Shown here: one piece after another, positions 5,597 through 13,513 of the stretch
How positions within the stretch are numbered: the stretch's first letter is position 1
Layout: every line of letters starts with the position of its first letter
Assembly (NCBI GenBank): GCA_035084275.1
Contig: CM068771.1
Span: 3,038,001 to 3,102,000, forward strand
Direction of reading: 5' to 3'
DNA: 64,000 nucleotides
From: Hydrolagus colliei
Lineage: Eukaryota
Program-made: the position numbers and the translations under genes
Notes under the pieces: model-generated
Database searches by the model: none
What the model was told of the DNA's origin: nothing
The model's input: the letters and a program-made list of their open reading frames with translations, nothing else

Positions 5597-5611
5597 TCAA
5601 TTACTTTTCTC
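5597..5611 (-). CDS. TAPBP: Tapasin-family gene, exon 8 (EKSN*)
   Basis: Strong acceptor TCTTCCTTTCCTCTCAG; phase 0; completes a KxKxx ER-retrieval motif (KEKSN*). Confidence 0.7.
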   Translation of the reverse strand, partial: EKSN

Positions 5612-5689
5612 CTGAGAGGAAAGGAAGACAGATAATGTTACTGCAGATGGCAACAGGGGCTAGGGGAAAGGGGGTCACGTCTGGGTGGG

Positions 5690-6150
5690 TCAGGACTGGG
5701 GATGAGTTGAGGTTTGGGTCCAGGTTGAGAGGTTGGAAGTCAGGATCAGAGTTGAGTGGTTGAGGTTGGGGTCAGGGTTGAGAGGTTGGGGGTCAAGATC
5801 AGGGGTCAGTGGTTGAGGTTGGGGTTAGTGGTGAGAAGTTGAAGTCAGGGTCAGGATCGAGGGTGAGTGGTTGAGGTTGGAGTCAAGGGTGGGAGGTGGG
5901 GGGTCAGGATCAGGGGTGAGCAGTTGAATTTGGTGTCAGGGGTGAGAGGTTGAGGTTGGGGGTCAGAATCAGGGGTGAGAGTTTGAGTTTGGGGTCAAGG
6001 TTGGGGTCAGGATCAGGGATGAGGGATTGAGGTTGGGGTCAGGGGTGAGAGGTTGAGGTTGGGGTCAGAGGTGAGAGGTTGAGGTTGGGGTCAGGGGTGA
6101 GAGATTGAGGTTGGGGGTCAGGATCAGGGATGAGTTTGGGGTCAGGGTTG
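5690..6150. repeat. G-rich minisatellite (about 30-35 bp unit, GGGGTCAGGATCAGGGGTGAGAGGTTGAGGTT) in tapasin intron 7; further units at 6730-6815
   Basis: Visible tandem degenerate units. Confidence 0.9.
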
Positions 6151-6222
6151 AGGTGGAGGAGAACGAGTCCCTCGACCCGACTGATGGTTGGGAGTGATAT
6201 TTGCGAGGTTTTATTTTCTCAC

Positions 6223-6260
6223 CTTCTCTTCCTGAACCGAGCCGAAGATCAGGGGGTAAA
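6223..6260 (-). CDS. TAPBP: Tapasin-family gene, exon 7 (cytoplasmic, VYPLIFGSVQEEK)
   Basis: TTTCTAG acceptor, AAG|GTGAGA donor; 38 nt, phase 1 to 0, links exon 6 to exon 8 in frame. Confidence 0.65.
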
Positions 6261-7004
6261 CTAGAAACCAAAACCAAAACAGATTTAATACATCTTCTTT
6301 GCACTTTCTCTCTTCTTCACTTTCTCCCCATTCCACTTGATAGGTGAGTGCAAGGATCTTGAAATCCATTCTGCGATGGGAGCCACGACTGGNNNNNNNN
6401 NNNNNNNNNNNNNNNNNNNNNNNNNNNNNNNNNNNNNNNNNNNNNNNNNNNNNNNNNNNNNNNNNNNNNNNNNNNNNNNNNNNNNNNNNNNNNNNNNNNN
6501 NNNNNNNNNNNNNNNNNNNNNNNNNNNNNNNNNNNNNNNNNNNNNNNNNNNGGTTGTTTGTCTCGTAGTCCATCACTGGGCAGGAGTGAGGTAGGGAAGT
6601 GCTCTGAGATGCCGTCTGGCGTGGAGAGCGCTATATCAATCCAATTTATTGTTGTCGTTGTAGGGATAGCAGGGTAGCCAAAGGCTTGGTTGAGACGGAG
6701 GTTTTGGGGCGTGACTTGACTAAAGGAGGCAAGGTTGGGGTCAGGGGTGAGAGGTTGAGGTGGGGTTTGGGTCAGGATCAGGGGCAAGAGGTTGAGGTTG
6801 GGGGTCAGTGAGGCTGAAGGCCCGCCTGCCGATGGGGTGTGGGGTTTGCAGGCCGGAGCCAGCTGAGCAGAGGGAGCGGTTGGAATGGTGGTCGGTGTCA
6901 AGGCGATGAACGCGTTCGAGAACCAGCTCGAGTTCTGGAAGGGCGAGATCAAACCCGACCTCGGGATCTGGTGATGGACGAGATGGGGGGGGTGAGTCAC
7001 TCAC

Positions 7005-7106
7005 CTGATTTATTGTAGATCCAGTAGAGCAGCCTCAGGACTCCATAAAGGACGAAGGCACAAACAAACATTCCCATCATATCCTCGATTGAGGGTCCAG
7101 AAGCTC
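7005..7106 (-). CDS. TAPBP: Tapasin-family gene, exon 6 (transmembrane)
   Basis: GASGPSIEDMMGMFVCAFVLYGVLRLLYWIYNKS matches the tapasin GPSLEDSVGLFLSAFLLLGLFKALGW signature; (CT)n-CAG acceptor, G|GTGAGT donor; 102 nt, phase 1-1. Confidence 0.9.
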
Positions 7107-7142
<36 letters not shown>

Positions 7143-7189
7143 CAGAGAGAGAGAGGAGAGAGACATTGTTGGTTTCTCTGAGGGCATGT

Positions 7190-7394
7190 AATAATAATAA
7201 TAATAATCCTTGCATTTTGATATAGCGCTTTTCACACCTTATCGACGTCTCAAAGCGCTTCGCAGAATAGACGGTAAAGCGAATCGACTATATATTTGTG
7301 GGTGAAACACGGCAGCCAATTGCGCACAGCAGCGTCCCCCACAAACAGACGTGGATTGAAATGATCAATTTTTGGGGGGAGATTATTATTAGGC

Positions 7395-7468
<74 letters not shown>

Positions 7469-11035: not shown

Positions 11036-11368
11036 CTGAGATCTCCAGGTCAATCGACTGCTGTGCGTGGAGGTTGGGCATGTAGACGGTGCAGATGTAG
11101 GTTCCCTCGTGTTCCTGGCTGACGTTGCGGATGAGGAGGGAGGCGTTTCCCCGGCTGTGCAGCTCGTAGAAGAGCATCTCGCTGCCGTCGCGCGCCACGT
11201 GCACCCGGTCCCGGGGGCCGTGATAGGCGTAGACCAGGTGCCCGCTGCCCTTGTACTGGTAGCGCCACTCCACCCCGAAGCCGGTCGTCCTGTCCATGGT
11301 GAAGCCGCAGTCCAGGAGCACATCGCGTCCCAGCCGAGTCCTCACCAGCCCAGAGCGCGAGAACACGT
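11036..11368 (-). CDS. TAPBP: Tapasin-family gene, exon 4 (Ig V-like domain); 5' end lies in the gap 11369-11699
   Basis: VFSRSGLVRTRLGRDVLLDCGF...FGVEWRYQYKGSGHLVYAY...GNASLLIRNV...EGTYICTVYMPNLHAQQSIDLEIS; G|GTGCAC donor at 11035. Confidence 0.93.
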
Positions 11369-11739
11369 NNNNNNNNNNNNNNNNNNNNNNNNNNNNNNNN
11401 NNNNNNNNNNNNNNNNNNNNNNNNNNNNNNNNNNNNNNNNNNNNNNNNNNNNNNNNNNNNNNNNNNNNNNNNNNNNNNNNNNNNNNNNNNNNNNNNNNNN
11501 NNNNNNNNNNNNNNNNNNNNNNNNNNNNNNNNNNNNNNNNNNNNNNNNNNNNNNNNNNNNNNNNNNNNNNNNNNNNNNNNNNNNNNNNNNNNNNNNNNNN
11601 NNNNNNNNNNNNNNNNNNNNNNNNNNNNNNNNNNNNNNNNNNNNNNNNNNNNNNNNNNNNNNNNNNNNNNNNNNNNNNNNNNNNNNNNNNNNNNNNNNNG
11701 CATACGCAGGCCGACACGGGTTACACACACGGGCGGACG

Positions 11740-12245
11740 GACGTCATATGCACTCACACACGCACACACACACGGTTACACACACGGGTGGGGATTGGGA
11801 TCAGAGTTGACCCACTCTGTGTGTGTGTGCTTGTGTGTGTGCGTAGGCATGTGTGTGCGTGCGTGTGCCGTGTGTTTGTGCACATGTATGTGCGTGCGTG
11901 CGTGAATGTGTGTGCGCGCGAGTGTGTGCATGAGTGTGTGTGTAGGCATGTGTGTGTGTGCGTGTGCTGTGTGTTTGTGCACGTGTGTGTGAGTGCGTGA
12001 ATGTGTGCGTACGTGTGGTGTGCATGAGTGTGTGTGCGCATGTGAGTGTGCGCGCTCGTGTGAGTGTGTGAGTGTGTGCGCTCTTCTGTGAGTGCGTGCG
12101 TGTGTGTGCGCTCTTGTGTGAGTGTGTGCGTGCGTGTGTGTGCGCTCTTGTGTGAGTGCGTGCGTGAGTGTGAGTTGCGTGCGTGAGTGTGTGCGTGCGC
12201 CTGCGTGTGAGTGAGTGAGTGAGTGTGCGCGTGCGTGAGTGTGCG
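11740..12245. repeat. Compound (TG)/(CG)/(GA) microsatellite in tapasin intron 3
   Basis: Low-complexity dinucleotide tract. Confidence 0.9.
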
Positions 12246-12259
12246 CGATGCCTGAGTAC

Positions 12260-12532
12260 CTGATGTTTTCCGTGGGGCAGAGCCCACCTCTCCTGCGGGG
12301 GCCGAGACCAGACGGTGGACACTGGCCACGCGGAGAGCGTGGCCGGGAGCCTGAATGTCGGAGGCAAACCAGGAGCCTGAGGTGTAGGCCGGGGTCTTCT
12401 GGTCCTGGGTCAGGCCCTGAGCCCACGGGACGTGGGATTCCTGGGGCAGGTAATTGTTAATCTCACAGTGAGGCTTCTCGGCCTCCAGGTCGAGCCGCTG
12501 AAAGCCAGGGTCACAGATCACGTTCCAATAAT
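12260..12532 (-). CDS. TAPBP: Tapasin-family gene, exon 3 (second half of N-terminal domain)
   Basis: DYWNVICDPGFQ...KPHCEINNYLPQESHVPWAQGLTQDQKTPAYTSGSWFAS aligns with tapasin PHCEMSRF...KWASGLTPAQNCPRALDGAW; CTAG acceptor, G|GTACTC donor; 273 nt, phase 1-1. Confidence 0.85.
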
Positions 12533-12595
12533 CTAGTTCGATGGGGAGAAAAAGATCTCCATTAACTAGTTTGGGGGGCTCAGTTCGAATGTCAG

Positions 12596-12629
<34 letters not shown>

Positions 12630-12809
12630 TCACATCCTCGTACTTAGAGGAGTCTCCAATCTAGATTGAGAATCCCATAAAATGTACAGAGTGTCTGGAA
12701 TGAAACGCACACACACACACACACACACACTCTCGCTCTCTCTCTCTCTCTCTCGCCTTGGTGAGATGCTTTCCGTTCACTTAATCCCACAGAGTATTCA
12801 CGGCAAGTT

Positions 12810-13165
12810 AAGGATAATAATAATCCTTGCGTTTGACGTAGCGCTTTTCGCATCTTATCGACGTCTCAAAGCGCTTCACGGAATAGACTGTAAAGTAAAG
12901 TGACTGTATATTTGTGGGCGAAACGCGGCAGCCGATTGCGCACAGCGGCGTCCCCCATACAAACGGCCGTGCGTTGAAATGACCAATTTATTATTTTTTT
13001 GAGGGATTATTATTAGGCGCGTGTGTGTGTCTGTGTGTGTGTCTGTGTGTGTGTGTGTGTGTGGGCGGAGTAACAAAACTTTCCCAAGGTTTCGCTCTGA
13101 CCTGCCTGGATTCGAACACAGGTCTCAGGCTCGTAAGGCGAGTGGCTCTAACCACTGAGCTACAC
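12810..13165 (-). mobile_element. Dominant SINE, young copy with CpGs intact
   Basis: Full head (TAGCTCAGTGG A box, GTTCGAATCC B box), core and L2-type tail. Confidence 0.85.
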
Positions 13166-13291
13166 TTGAAGCTCTTTGAGACACGTAGAGAACGTGAAAG
13201 CTCCATATCGAACGAATATGAAATAAAATACAATGAGCCGACACGCGTGTGCGCACGCATGTTGCCTTGCGTGCCGCAGAACGTATCTCAC

Positions 13292-13513
13292 CTGTGACTT
13301 CAAACAGCATGCCAGGCTTCAGGTCCGTGTCCGGGGAGACCTGCCCGGTGATGTCCGGCTCCGGCCCGGGCTTGTGTGAGACGCGGCGGAGGTGAAGCTG
13401 GGATTTCTCCTGAGTCACGGCCTTCGGGAAGCTGCCTCTCTGGCCGCCCCCTTCCTCGATGTACCAGCAATCCACCAGCACGTCCCCCGGCGTGGGGGAC
13501 CCCTGTTTGGCCA
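13292..13513 (-). CDS. TAPBP: Tapasin-family gene, exon 2 (first half of N-terminal domain, including the editing loop)
   Basis: VAKQGSPTPGDVLVDCWYIEEGGGQRGSFPKAVTQEKSQLHLRR...LFEVT; CTTCAG acceptor, G|GTGAGA donor; 222 nt, phase 1-1. The leader is unresolved (see findings). Confidence 0.85.

Follow-up and report, generated by a model that had tools for sequence, protein, structure and literature searches.

Tapasin (TAPBP) and TAPBPR, the product of the human TAPBPL gene, are among the closest described relatives of a gene that we analyzed in the holocephalan Hydrolagus colliei, on a stretch of 64,000 nucleotides (assembly GCA_035084275.1, contig CM068771.1, positions 3,038,001 to 3,102,000 of the forward strand; hereafter the window, from whose first base all coordinates are counted). 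[quoted passage not shown] The Cys95 that serves human tapasin for ERp57 is not conserved outside mammals (PMC5824609), and chicken tapasin remains stable and works in the absence of ERp57 (PMC10534222) and has an Arg instead of a Lys in its membrane helix (Blees et al. 2015, PMC4661472). Tapasin of the elephant shark Callorhinchus milii is also public (UniProt V9KRF2; NCBI XP_042200754.1, named ‘tapasin-like’). Judging from sequence comparison, we put the probability at about 92% that the Hydrolagus locus is a TAPBP ortholog whose editing loop, Thr at position 95, membrane Arg and cytoplasmic tail are inherited ancestral states.

Comparison with known tapasins and TAPBPR

The elephant-shark protein is 81% identical to the predicted Hydrolagus protein and shares with it an identical 28-residue span around the editing loop, Thr at the Cys95 position, a Cys in the motif VICDP, the membrane Arg and a KEKxN tail; the exon junctions agree and the two loci are collinear. 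The two differ in the first residues of the mature protein and in a probable retrocopy of ATG101 that lies upstream of the gene only in the window. With human tapasin the likeness extends to fold and domain order, the Cys7-Cys71 pair, Glu72, the E185/R187/Q189/Q261 patch, the N233 sequon, the GPS(I/L)ED motif, a basic helix residue and a dilysine tail. However, the human span is 6 residues shorter, human tapasin has Cys95 and Lys where the window has Thr and Arg, and it lacks two cysteines of the immunoglobulin (Ig) V-like domain that are kept in the window; the human protein also has an insertion of ~17 residues in that domain. As a side observation, both of these Ig V-like cysteines are absent from all seven placental tapasins that we sampled and kept by every other family member.

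Tapasins of chicken and other birds resemble the Hydrolagus protein in having no Cys at position 95 and an Arg in the membrane helix, but they have a 26-residue span, a very long branch and exactly six lumenal cysteines, and therefore no free thiol. TAPBPR resembles it in its 27-residue span, its overall fold and a hydrophobic residue in the same column (Leu of RGAL versus Phe of RGSF in the window), but forms a separate clade (100/100 support), is only ~30% identical, has neither a basic helix residue nor a dilysine tail, and carries an extra Cys upstream of its Cys71 equivalent. The Hydrolagus gene is an intact-looking, ordinary ortholog of a well-known gene, with a near-twin from the elephant shark already public.

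Phylogenetic placement

The domain order is the one expected of tapasin, from an N-terminal barrel/Ig fusion through Ig V-like and Ig C1 domains to a single membrane helix and a short tail. Pfam recognized V-set and C1-set domains in the C-terminal piece, and the N-terminal piece gave no Pfam match. In a search against PDB this N-terminal piece matched human tapasin alone (E 5e-10), with no TAPBPR match even at E up to 1. The best match to the protein in the sequence databases was the C. milii entry ‘Tapasin long form’ (81% identity), followed by ‘tapasin-like’ proteins of sharks and rays (51-58%) and coelacanth tapasin (51%), and then by tapasins of lungfish, turtles, sturgeon and teleosts; TAPBPR-type proteins scored far lower (29-33% identity). 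No database protein matched at 90% identity or above, and the cluster that holds elephant-shark tapasin contains C. milii entries only.

We aligned 73 proteins (49 TAPBP, 16 TAPBPR and 8 from a third lineage) and inferred a maximum-likelihood tree with IQ-TREE under LG+C20. Named amniote, amphibian and mammalian tapasins were added to the alignment, and members of the other lineages came from a profile search of 1.84 billion representatives and were named by cluster look-up. Long multi-Ig proteins dominated the results of that search, from which we kept only single-stretch matches of ~380-500 residues. TAPBP, TAPBPR and the third lineage formed three clades, each with 100/100 support. The window protein pairs with that of the elephant shark (100/100) within a chondrichthyan TAPBP clade (100/99). 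The third lineage, which is TAPBPL in the sense of Grimholt 2018, comprises sequences from sturgeon, arowana, lungfish, caecilian, frogs, condor and wombat and excludes the window. Seven of its eight sampled members, all but the Xenopus row, end in K-x-K-P-Y. The sequence-only reading of this stretch had held that membership in TAPBP proper or in a tapasin-like lineage could not be settled from the window; the tree settles it in favor of TAPBP proper. Over 424 codons the ratio of nonsynonymous to synonymous substitution rates (dN/dS) against the elephant shark is 0.25, with dS 0.38, and we therefore consider the gene to be under purifying selection.

Gene structure

The gene lies on the minus strand and runs from 13513 to 5597 in seven readable coding exons, numbered 2-8. 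Exon borders were set at canonical AG/GT sites after translation of the minus strand. Exons 2-6 are uniformly in phase 1, no stop interrupts any of the seven, splice sites are canonical and phases are consistent throughout. The exons and the residues discussed below are as follows.

13292..13513, minus strand: exon 2 (222 nucleotides, phase 1-1, AG acceptor and GT donor), encoding the N-terminal domain with the first conserved Cys and the editing loop
13386..13469, minus strand: 28-codon span CWYIEEGGGQRGSFPKAVTQEKSQLHLR, covering strand 1, the editing loop and strand 2, identical in elephant shark
12260..12532, minus strand: exon 3 (273 nucleotides), with the VICDP Cys, PHCEIN and the Thr at the human Cys95 position
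12515-12513, minus strand: VICDP Cys, in exon 3
12473-12456, minus strand: PHCEIN, equivalent of Cys71-Glu72, in exon 3
12395-12393, minus strand: Thr at the human Cys95 position, in WAQGLTQDQKTP, exon 3
11036..11368, minus strand: readable part of exon 4 (333 nucleotides), Ig V-like domain containing EWRYQ, the sequon GNAS and HAQQ
8794..9120, minus strand: exon 5 (327 nucleotides), Ig C1-set domain (Pfam C1-set, E 1.1e-13)
7005..7106, minus strand: exon 6 (102 nucleotides), GPSIED connecting peptide and membrane helix
7035-7033, minus strand: membrane-helix Arg, aligned with human Lys408, in exon 6
6223..6260, minus strand: exon 7 (38 nucleotides), cytoplasmic VYPLIFGSVQEEK, matching elephant-shark VYPLIFGSVQQEK
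5597..5611, minus strand: coding part of exon 8, EKSN and the stop TGA, collinear with the elephant-shark 3' end

The length of exon 2 equals that of exon 2 in Heptranchias, and its nucleotide identity to the elephant-shark exon is 89%; for exon 5 the corresponding identity is 82%. The Ig V-like domain of exon 4 is recognized as Pfam V-set (E 2.8e-16), and residues of this exon align with human E185/R187/Q189, N233 and Q261. The tail spans two exons, with ...VQEEK from exon 7 and EKSN from exon 8 giving the K-E-K-S-N end (KxKxx) that had been read from the sequence before, and the elephant-shark tail ends in ...QEKEKRN. One candidate structure, in which exon 6 is spliced directly to the last exon and the protein ends in GEK, was rejected as wrong, since the 38-nucleotide exon 7 (6260-6223) intervenes and restores KEKSN before the stop. 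The start of exon 3 had been open to doubt, because a different acceptor could have removed the VICDP Cys. The acceptor that includes this Cys is supported by both the protein and the genomic exon of the elephant shark, in each of which the junction between T and DYWNVICDP is the same.

Several repeats lie within the introns. A minisatellite with a 26/53-nucleotide unit occupies part of intron 7 (5706-6152), and long TG-rich microsatellites are found in intron 4 (10399-10977) and intron 3 (11823-12257), the latter adjoining an assembly gap.

Assembly gaps and exon 1

Two assembly gaps fall within the gene. We compared the window with the elephant-shark genomic locus, leaving gap letters unfilled; the orthologous blocks that flank both gaps are in the same order and on one strand, as in the elephant shark.

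6393..6551: assembly gap inside intron 6, where no coding sequence is expected; flanks collinear
11369..11699: assembly gap covering the 3' end of intron 3, the acceptor of exon 4 and ~9 nucleotides of exon 4; flanks collinear

The first gap can be placed in an intron because the reading frame is kept across the junctions of exons 6, 7 and 8, whose joined product has the same tail as the elephant-shark protein. For the second, exon 4 of the elephant shark starts 9 nucleotides before the base that aligns to window position 11368, and the spacing between conserved blocks across the gap is 420 nucleotides here versus 426 nucleotides there. The readable part of exon 4 opens at the second position of a codon, and an unread multiple of three keeps the frame. 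This gap is probably explained by the TG-rich microsatellites beside it.

Exon 1, with the signal peptide, lies upstream of exon 2 by 6.3 kb in Heptranchias and by ~6.7 kb in elephant shark. The matching distance in the window falls on the gaps 18055-18434, 19700-19899 and 19969-20117, and conserved upstream blocks bracket exon 1 between 13772 and 24236. An open reading frame directly upstream of exon 2 (13515-13587, minus strand), which begins MGLVADFLLCVSLLSSALA and resembles a signal peptide, was rejected as exon 1: it is in another frame and does not have the conserved M-x-E-I start. What it translates is the pyrimidine tract at the acceptor of exon 2 (13587-13515), with a run of nine C at the junction, and the same artefact appears in elephant shark.

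The expected interval of exon 1 also holds an intronless ATG101-like sequence (20719-21547, plus strand), spread over three frames that match positions 1-43, 33-115 and 118-157 of Pfam ATG101. It has no counterpart at the elephant-shark locus and is likely a processed pseudogene, or else carries indel errors.

The editing loop

In the window, the span from the first Cys to the LHLR strand is 28 residues long (CWYIEEGGGQRGSFPKAVTQEKSQLHLR, 13469-13386), as had been counted earlier from the sequence. The lengths given for comparison at that time, 22 in human tapasin and 27 in TAPBPR, also hold: phmmer alignments to human tapasin chains in PDB place a 6-residue gap in the human loop, and human TAPBPR (5wer_C) has a 27-residue span that reads RGAL. 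The proposed match of RGSF to this RGAL was borne out by way of whale TAPBPR, whose RGAF shares its MAFFT columns with the window RGSF and which aligns without gaps to human RGAL.

When we measured the span across the alignment, 66 of the 73 rows had 25-32 residues, in all three lineages, and only the seven placental tapasins had 22. The distribution is as follows.

27-28 residues: sharks, rays, coelacanth, lungfish, caecilian, newts, a frog, turtles, bichir and teleosts
28-32 residues: squamates
26 residues: birds
25 residues: sturgeon and paddlefish
25-32 residues: TAPBPR and the third lineage
22 residues: placental tapasins

On the tree, the short loop is a single change in placental mammals. 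The Phe of the loop tip is likewise widespread, standing in G-S-F-P in most cartilaginous fishes (Narcine has Ser), lungfish, sturgeon and bichir and in G-F-P in coelacanth; the same column has Met in turtles and squamates and Leu in percomorph teleosts and birds, while the loop-tip Leu of placental mammals is put in another column by MAFFT. In an AlphaFold2 (AF2) model of the elephant-shark ortholog, 11 residues (GGGQRGSFPKA) lie outside regular strands, between strands 1 and 2.

Position 95, membrane helix and tail

The phmmer alignment to human chains sets a window Thr opposite human Cys95 (WAQGLTQDQKTP versus WASGLTPAQNCP), in agreement with what had been proposed from the sequence. This column has Thr in all chondrichthyans (11 of 11) and Ser in coelacanth, lungfish, amphibians, turtles, birds and ray-finned fishes; Cys is found only in mammals and most squamates (not Vipera), which amounts to three changes on the tree. 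The squamate Cys means that the published confinement of C95 to human-type tapasin needs qualifying. A literature search with exact terms returned nothing on Cys95 in teleosts or elephant shark. Cys95, which forms the mixed disulfide with ERp57, marks the mammalian protein and not the family as a whole. With Thr at position 95, a covalent ERp57 conjugate at this site is therefore not possible, as in most vertebrates.

The GPSIED motif is present in the connecting peptide of the window, and the basic residue of the membrane helix is the Arg opposite Lys408, both as noted before. Arg occurs in the window, elephant shark, Heptranchias, turtles, birds and a gecko, and Lys in most others. Tails of the KxKxx or KKxx type are near-universal among the TAPBP rows. 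In phmmer alignments to human tapasin chains, the Cys7/Cys71 pair, Glu72 and the E185/R187/Q189/Q261 patch are identical, and the N233 sequon is conserved. The AF2 model of the 81%-identical elephant-shark ortholog has a predicted local distance difference test score (pLDDT) of 87 and a predicted template modeling score (pTM) of 0.79, and in structural comparison most resembles chains of human tapasin (E 1e-34 to 4e-26; TM up to 0.83), with TAPBPR next.

By homology, the encoded protein would be a type I membrane protein of the endoplasmic reticulum (ER), with an N-terminal barrel/Ig fusion, Ig V-like and Ig C1 domains, a membrane helix and a short tail. It would bridge empty MHC-I to TAP, with the membrane Arg forming a salt bridge to an Asp of TAP, and its KxKxx tail would retrieve it to the ER. 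The loop between strands 1 and 2 would edit peptides, holding its hydrophobic tip, here Phe, over the F pocket. The derived form is that of mammals, whose tapasin has a loop shorter by six residues and a gained Cys95.

The extra cysteine

The window and elephant-shark proteins have seven lumenal cysteines each, of which six correspond to the conserved pairs of the family. Because those six form pairs, the Cys in VICDP has no evident partner. This extra, apparently unpaired Cys had been noticed before; it is real, and the elephant-shark protein has it too. Within the 73-row alignment it was not found in the sampled elasmobranchs or lobe-finned lineages. All ten ray-finned fishes sampled have a Cys in the VICDP column, and each of them also has a second extra Cys, placed five residues ahead of the first conserved one; this co-occurrence suggests that the two form a disulfide in that group. 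The second Cys is absent from the holocephalans (window and elephant shark). In the AF2 model of the ortholog, the VICDP Cys lies in a well-predicted segment that has no regular secondary structure and follows the strand 89-94. It might be imagined that in holocephalans ERp57 or a different ER oxidoreductase attaches at the unpaired Cys, as a lineage-specific site, an idea that we consider unlikely; if it were true, this Cys would offer an independent route to a covalent conjugate in the loading complex. The earlier proposal that the protein works without an ERp57 disulfide may hold, and this Cys would be an alternative to it.

Alternative explanations

When human proteins alone are used for comparison, a span of 28 (versus 22 and 27) and a missing Cys95 do look mixed, and the sequence-only reading had described a ‘mosaic’ peptide editor that joins a TAPBPR-type loop to a tapasin-type anchor. 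That impression arose because the human proteins served as the only yardstick. In the 73-row alignment both the loop length and the loss of Cys95 are ordinary for non-mammalian TAPBP, as are the Phe tip, Thr or Ser at position 95, Arg or Lys in the helix and the dilysine tail, and the same combination of traits recurs in sharks, rays, coelacanth, lungfish, amphibians, turtles and teleosts. A formal alignment with this outcome is what the sequence-only reading had named as refuting its proposal. The tree holds no chimeric signal, placing the whole protein in TAPBP, and even the N-terminal piece by itself matches tapasin and not TAPBPR. We therefore give hardly any credence to a special editor that is functionally distinct from ordinary tapasin. 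What stands of the earlier interpretation is a tapasin-family editor with a basic helix residue, a KxKxx tail and no Cys95, for which the label ‘ancestral-type’ is fair; its mosaic nature does not stand. Membership in TAPBPR or in the third, tapasin-like lineage (TAPBPL) deserves next to no weight. The automatic NCBI names of the shark orthologs, ‘tapasin-like’, would speak for it, but the window falls inside TAPBP where the three lineages split with full support, sharks carry a separate TAPBPR-like gene (29-33% identity), and the window protein has neither the extra Cys of TAPBPR (column 181) nor the K-x-K-P-Y end seen in the third lineage.

A decaying or non-functional copy, as the lack of exon 1 and the two gaps in the gene might indicate, appears very unlikely. 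The probable ATG101 retrocopy in the expected interval of exon 1 could be taken as a sign of decay, as could the failure to find a signal-peptide exon in readable sequence, but none of the seven readable exons is interrupted by a stop, their splice sites are canonical and their phases agree, dN/dS is 0.25 at a dS of 0.38, and the distance at which exon 1 is expected (6-7 kb upstream in relatives) coincides with the gaps at 18055-20117. An inherited, functional TAPBP ortholog remains our preferred reading, and some points do weigh against it. Neither a search for an ATG with a hydrophobic stretch and a phase-1 donor nor tblastn with three N-termini revealed exon 1 in readable sequence. The gap at 11369-11699 hides parts of four exon 4 codons. 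Splicing and expression are judged from the protein and genome of the elephant shark, and TAP binding, ER retrieval and editing are inferred from conserved residues.

Other features of the window and neighboring loci

Three long open frames encode receptors of the rhodopsin family (Pfam 7tm_1), at 33552-34475 (minus strand), 43581-44540 (plus strand) and 56521-57444 (plus strand). The first and last of these share 97.5% identity and lie inverted relative to each other, a pattern suggestive of a recent inverted duplication. In two of the three frames no obvious start codon precedes the first membrane helix. Fragments of retroelement reverse transcriptases (Pfam RVT_1) were found at 50792-52183 (plus strand) and 49536-49940 (minus strand), and many repeats resembling short interspersed elements, common to the elephant-shark locus, are scattered throughout the window. 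A 216-residue open frame at 27191-27838 (minus strand) shows an Ig V-like pattern by eye (...YQITTDY...) and has no Pfam match. Two neighbors of tapasin in other species are not in the window: in elephant shark, a complement C3/C4/C5-like gene (A2M and ANATO domains) just downstream (L002, 34386-39179), and in Heptranchias, a SOUL-domain gene upstream (L001, 1-7180).

Implications for the tapasin family

Within this family it is human tapasin, the usual reference, that is the odd one out, since its loop was shortened by six residues in one event and the Cys pair of its Ig domain was lost in placental mammals. The seemingly TAPBPR-like features of fish tapasin are ancestral, in keeping with published hints that tapasins outside mammals function without a conjugate to ERp57.

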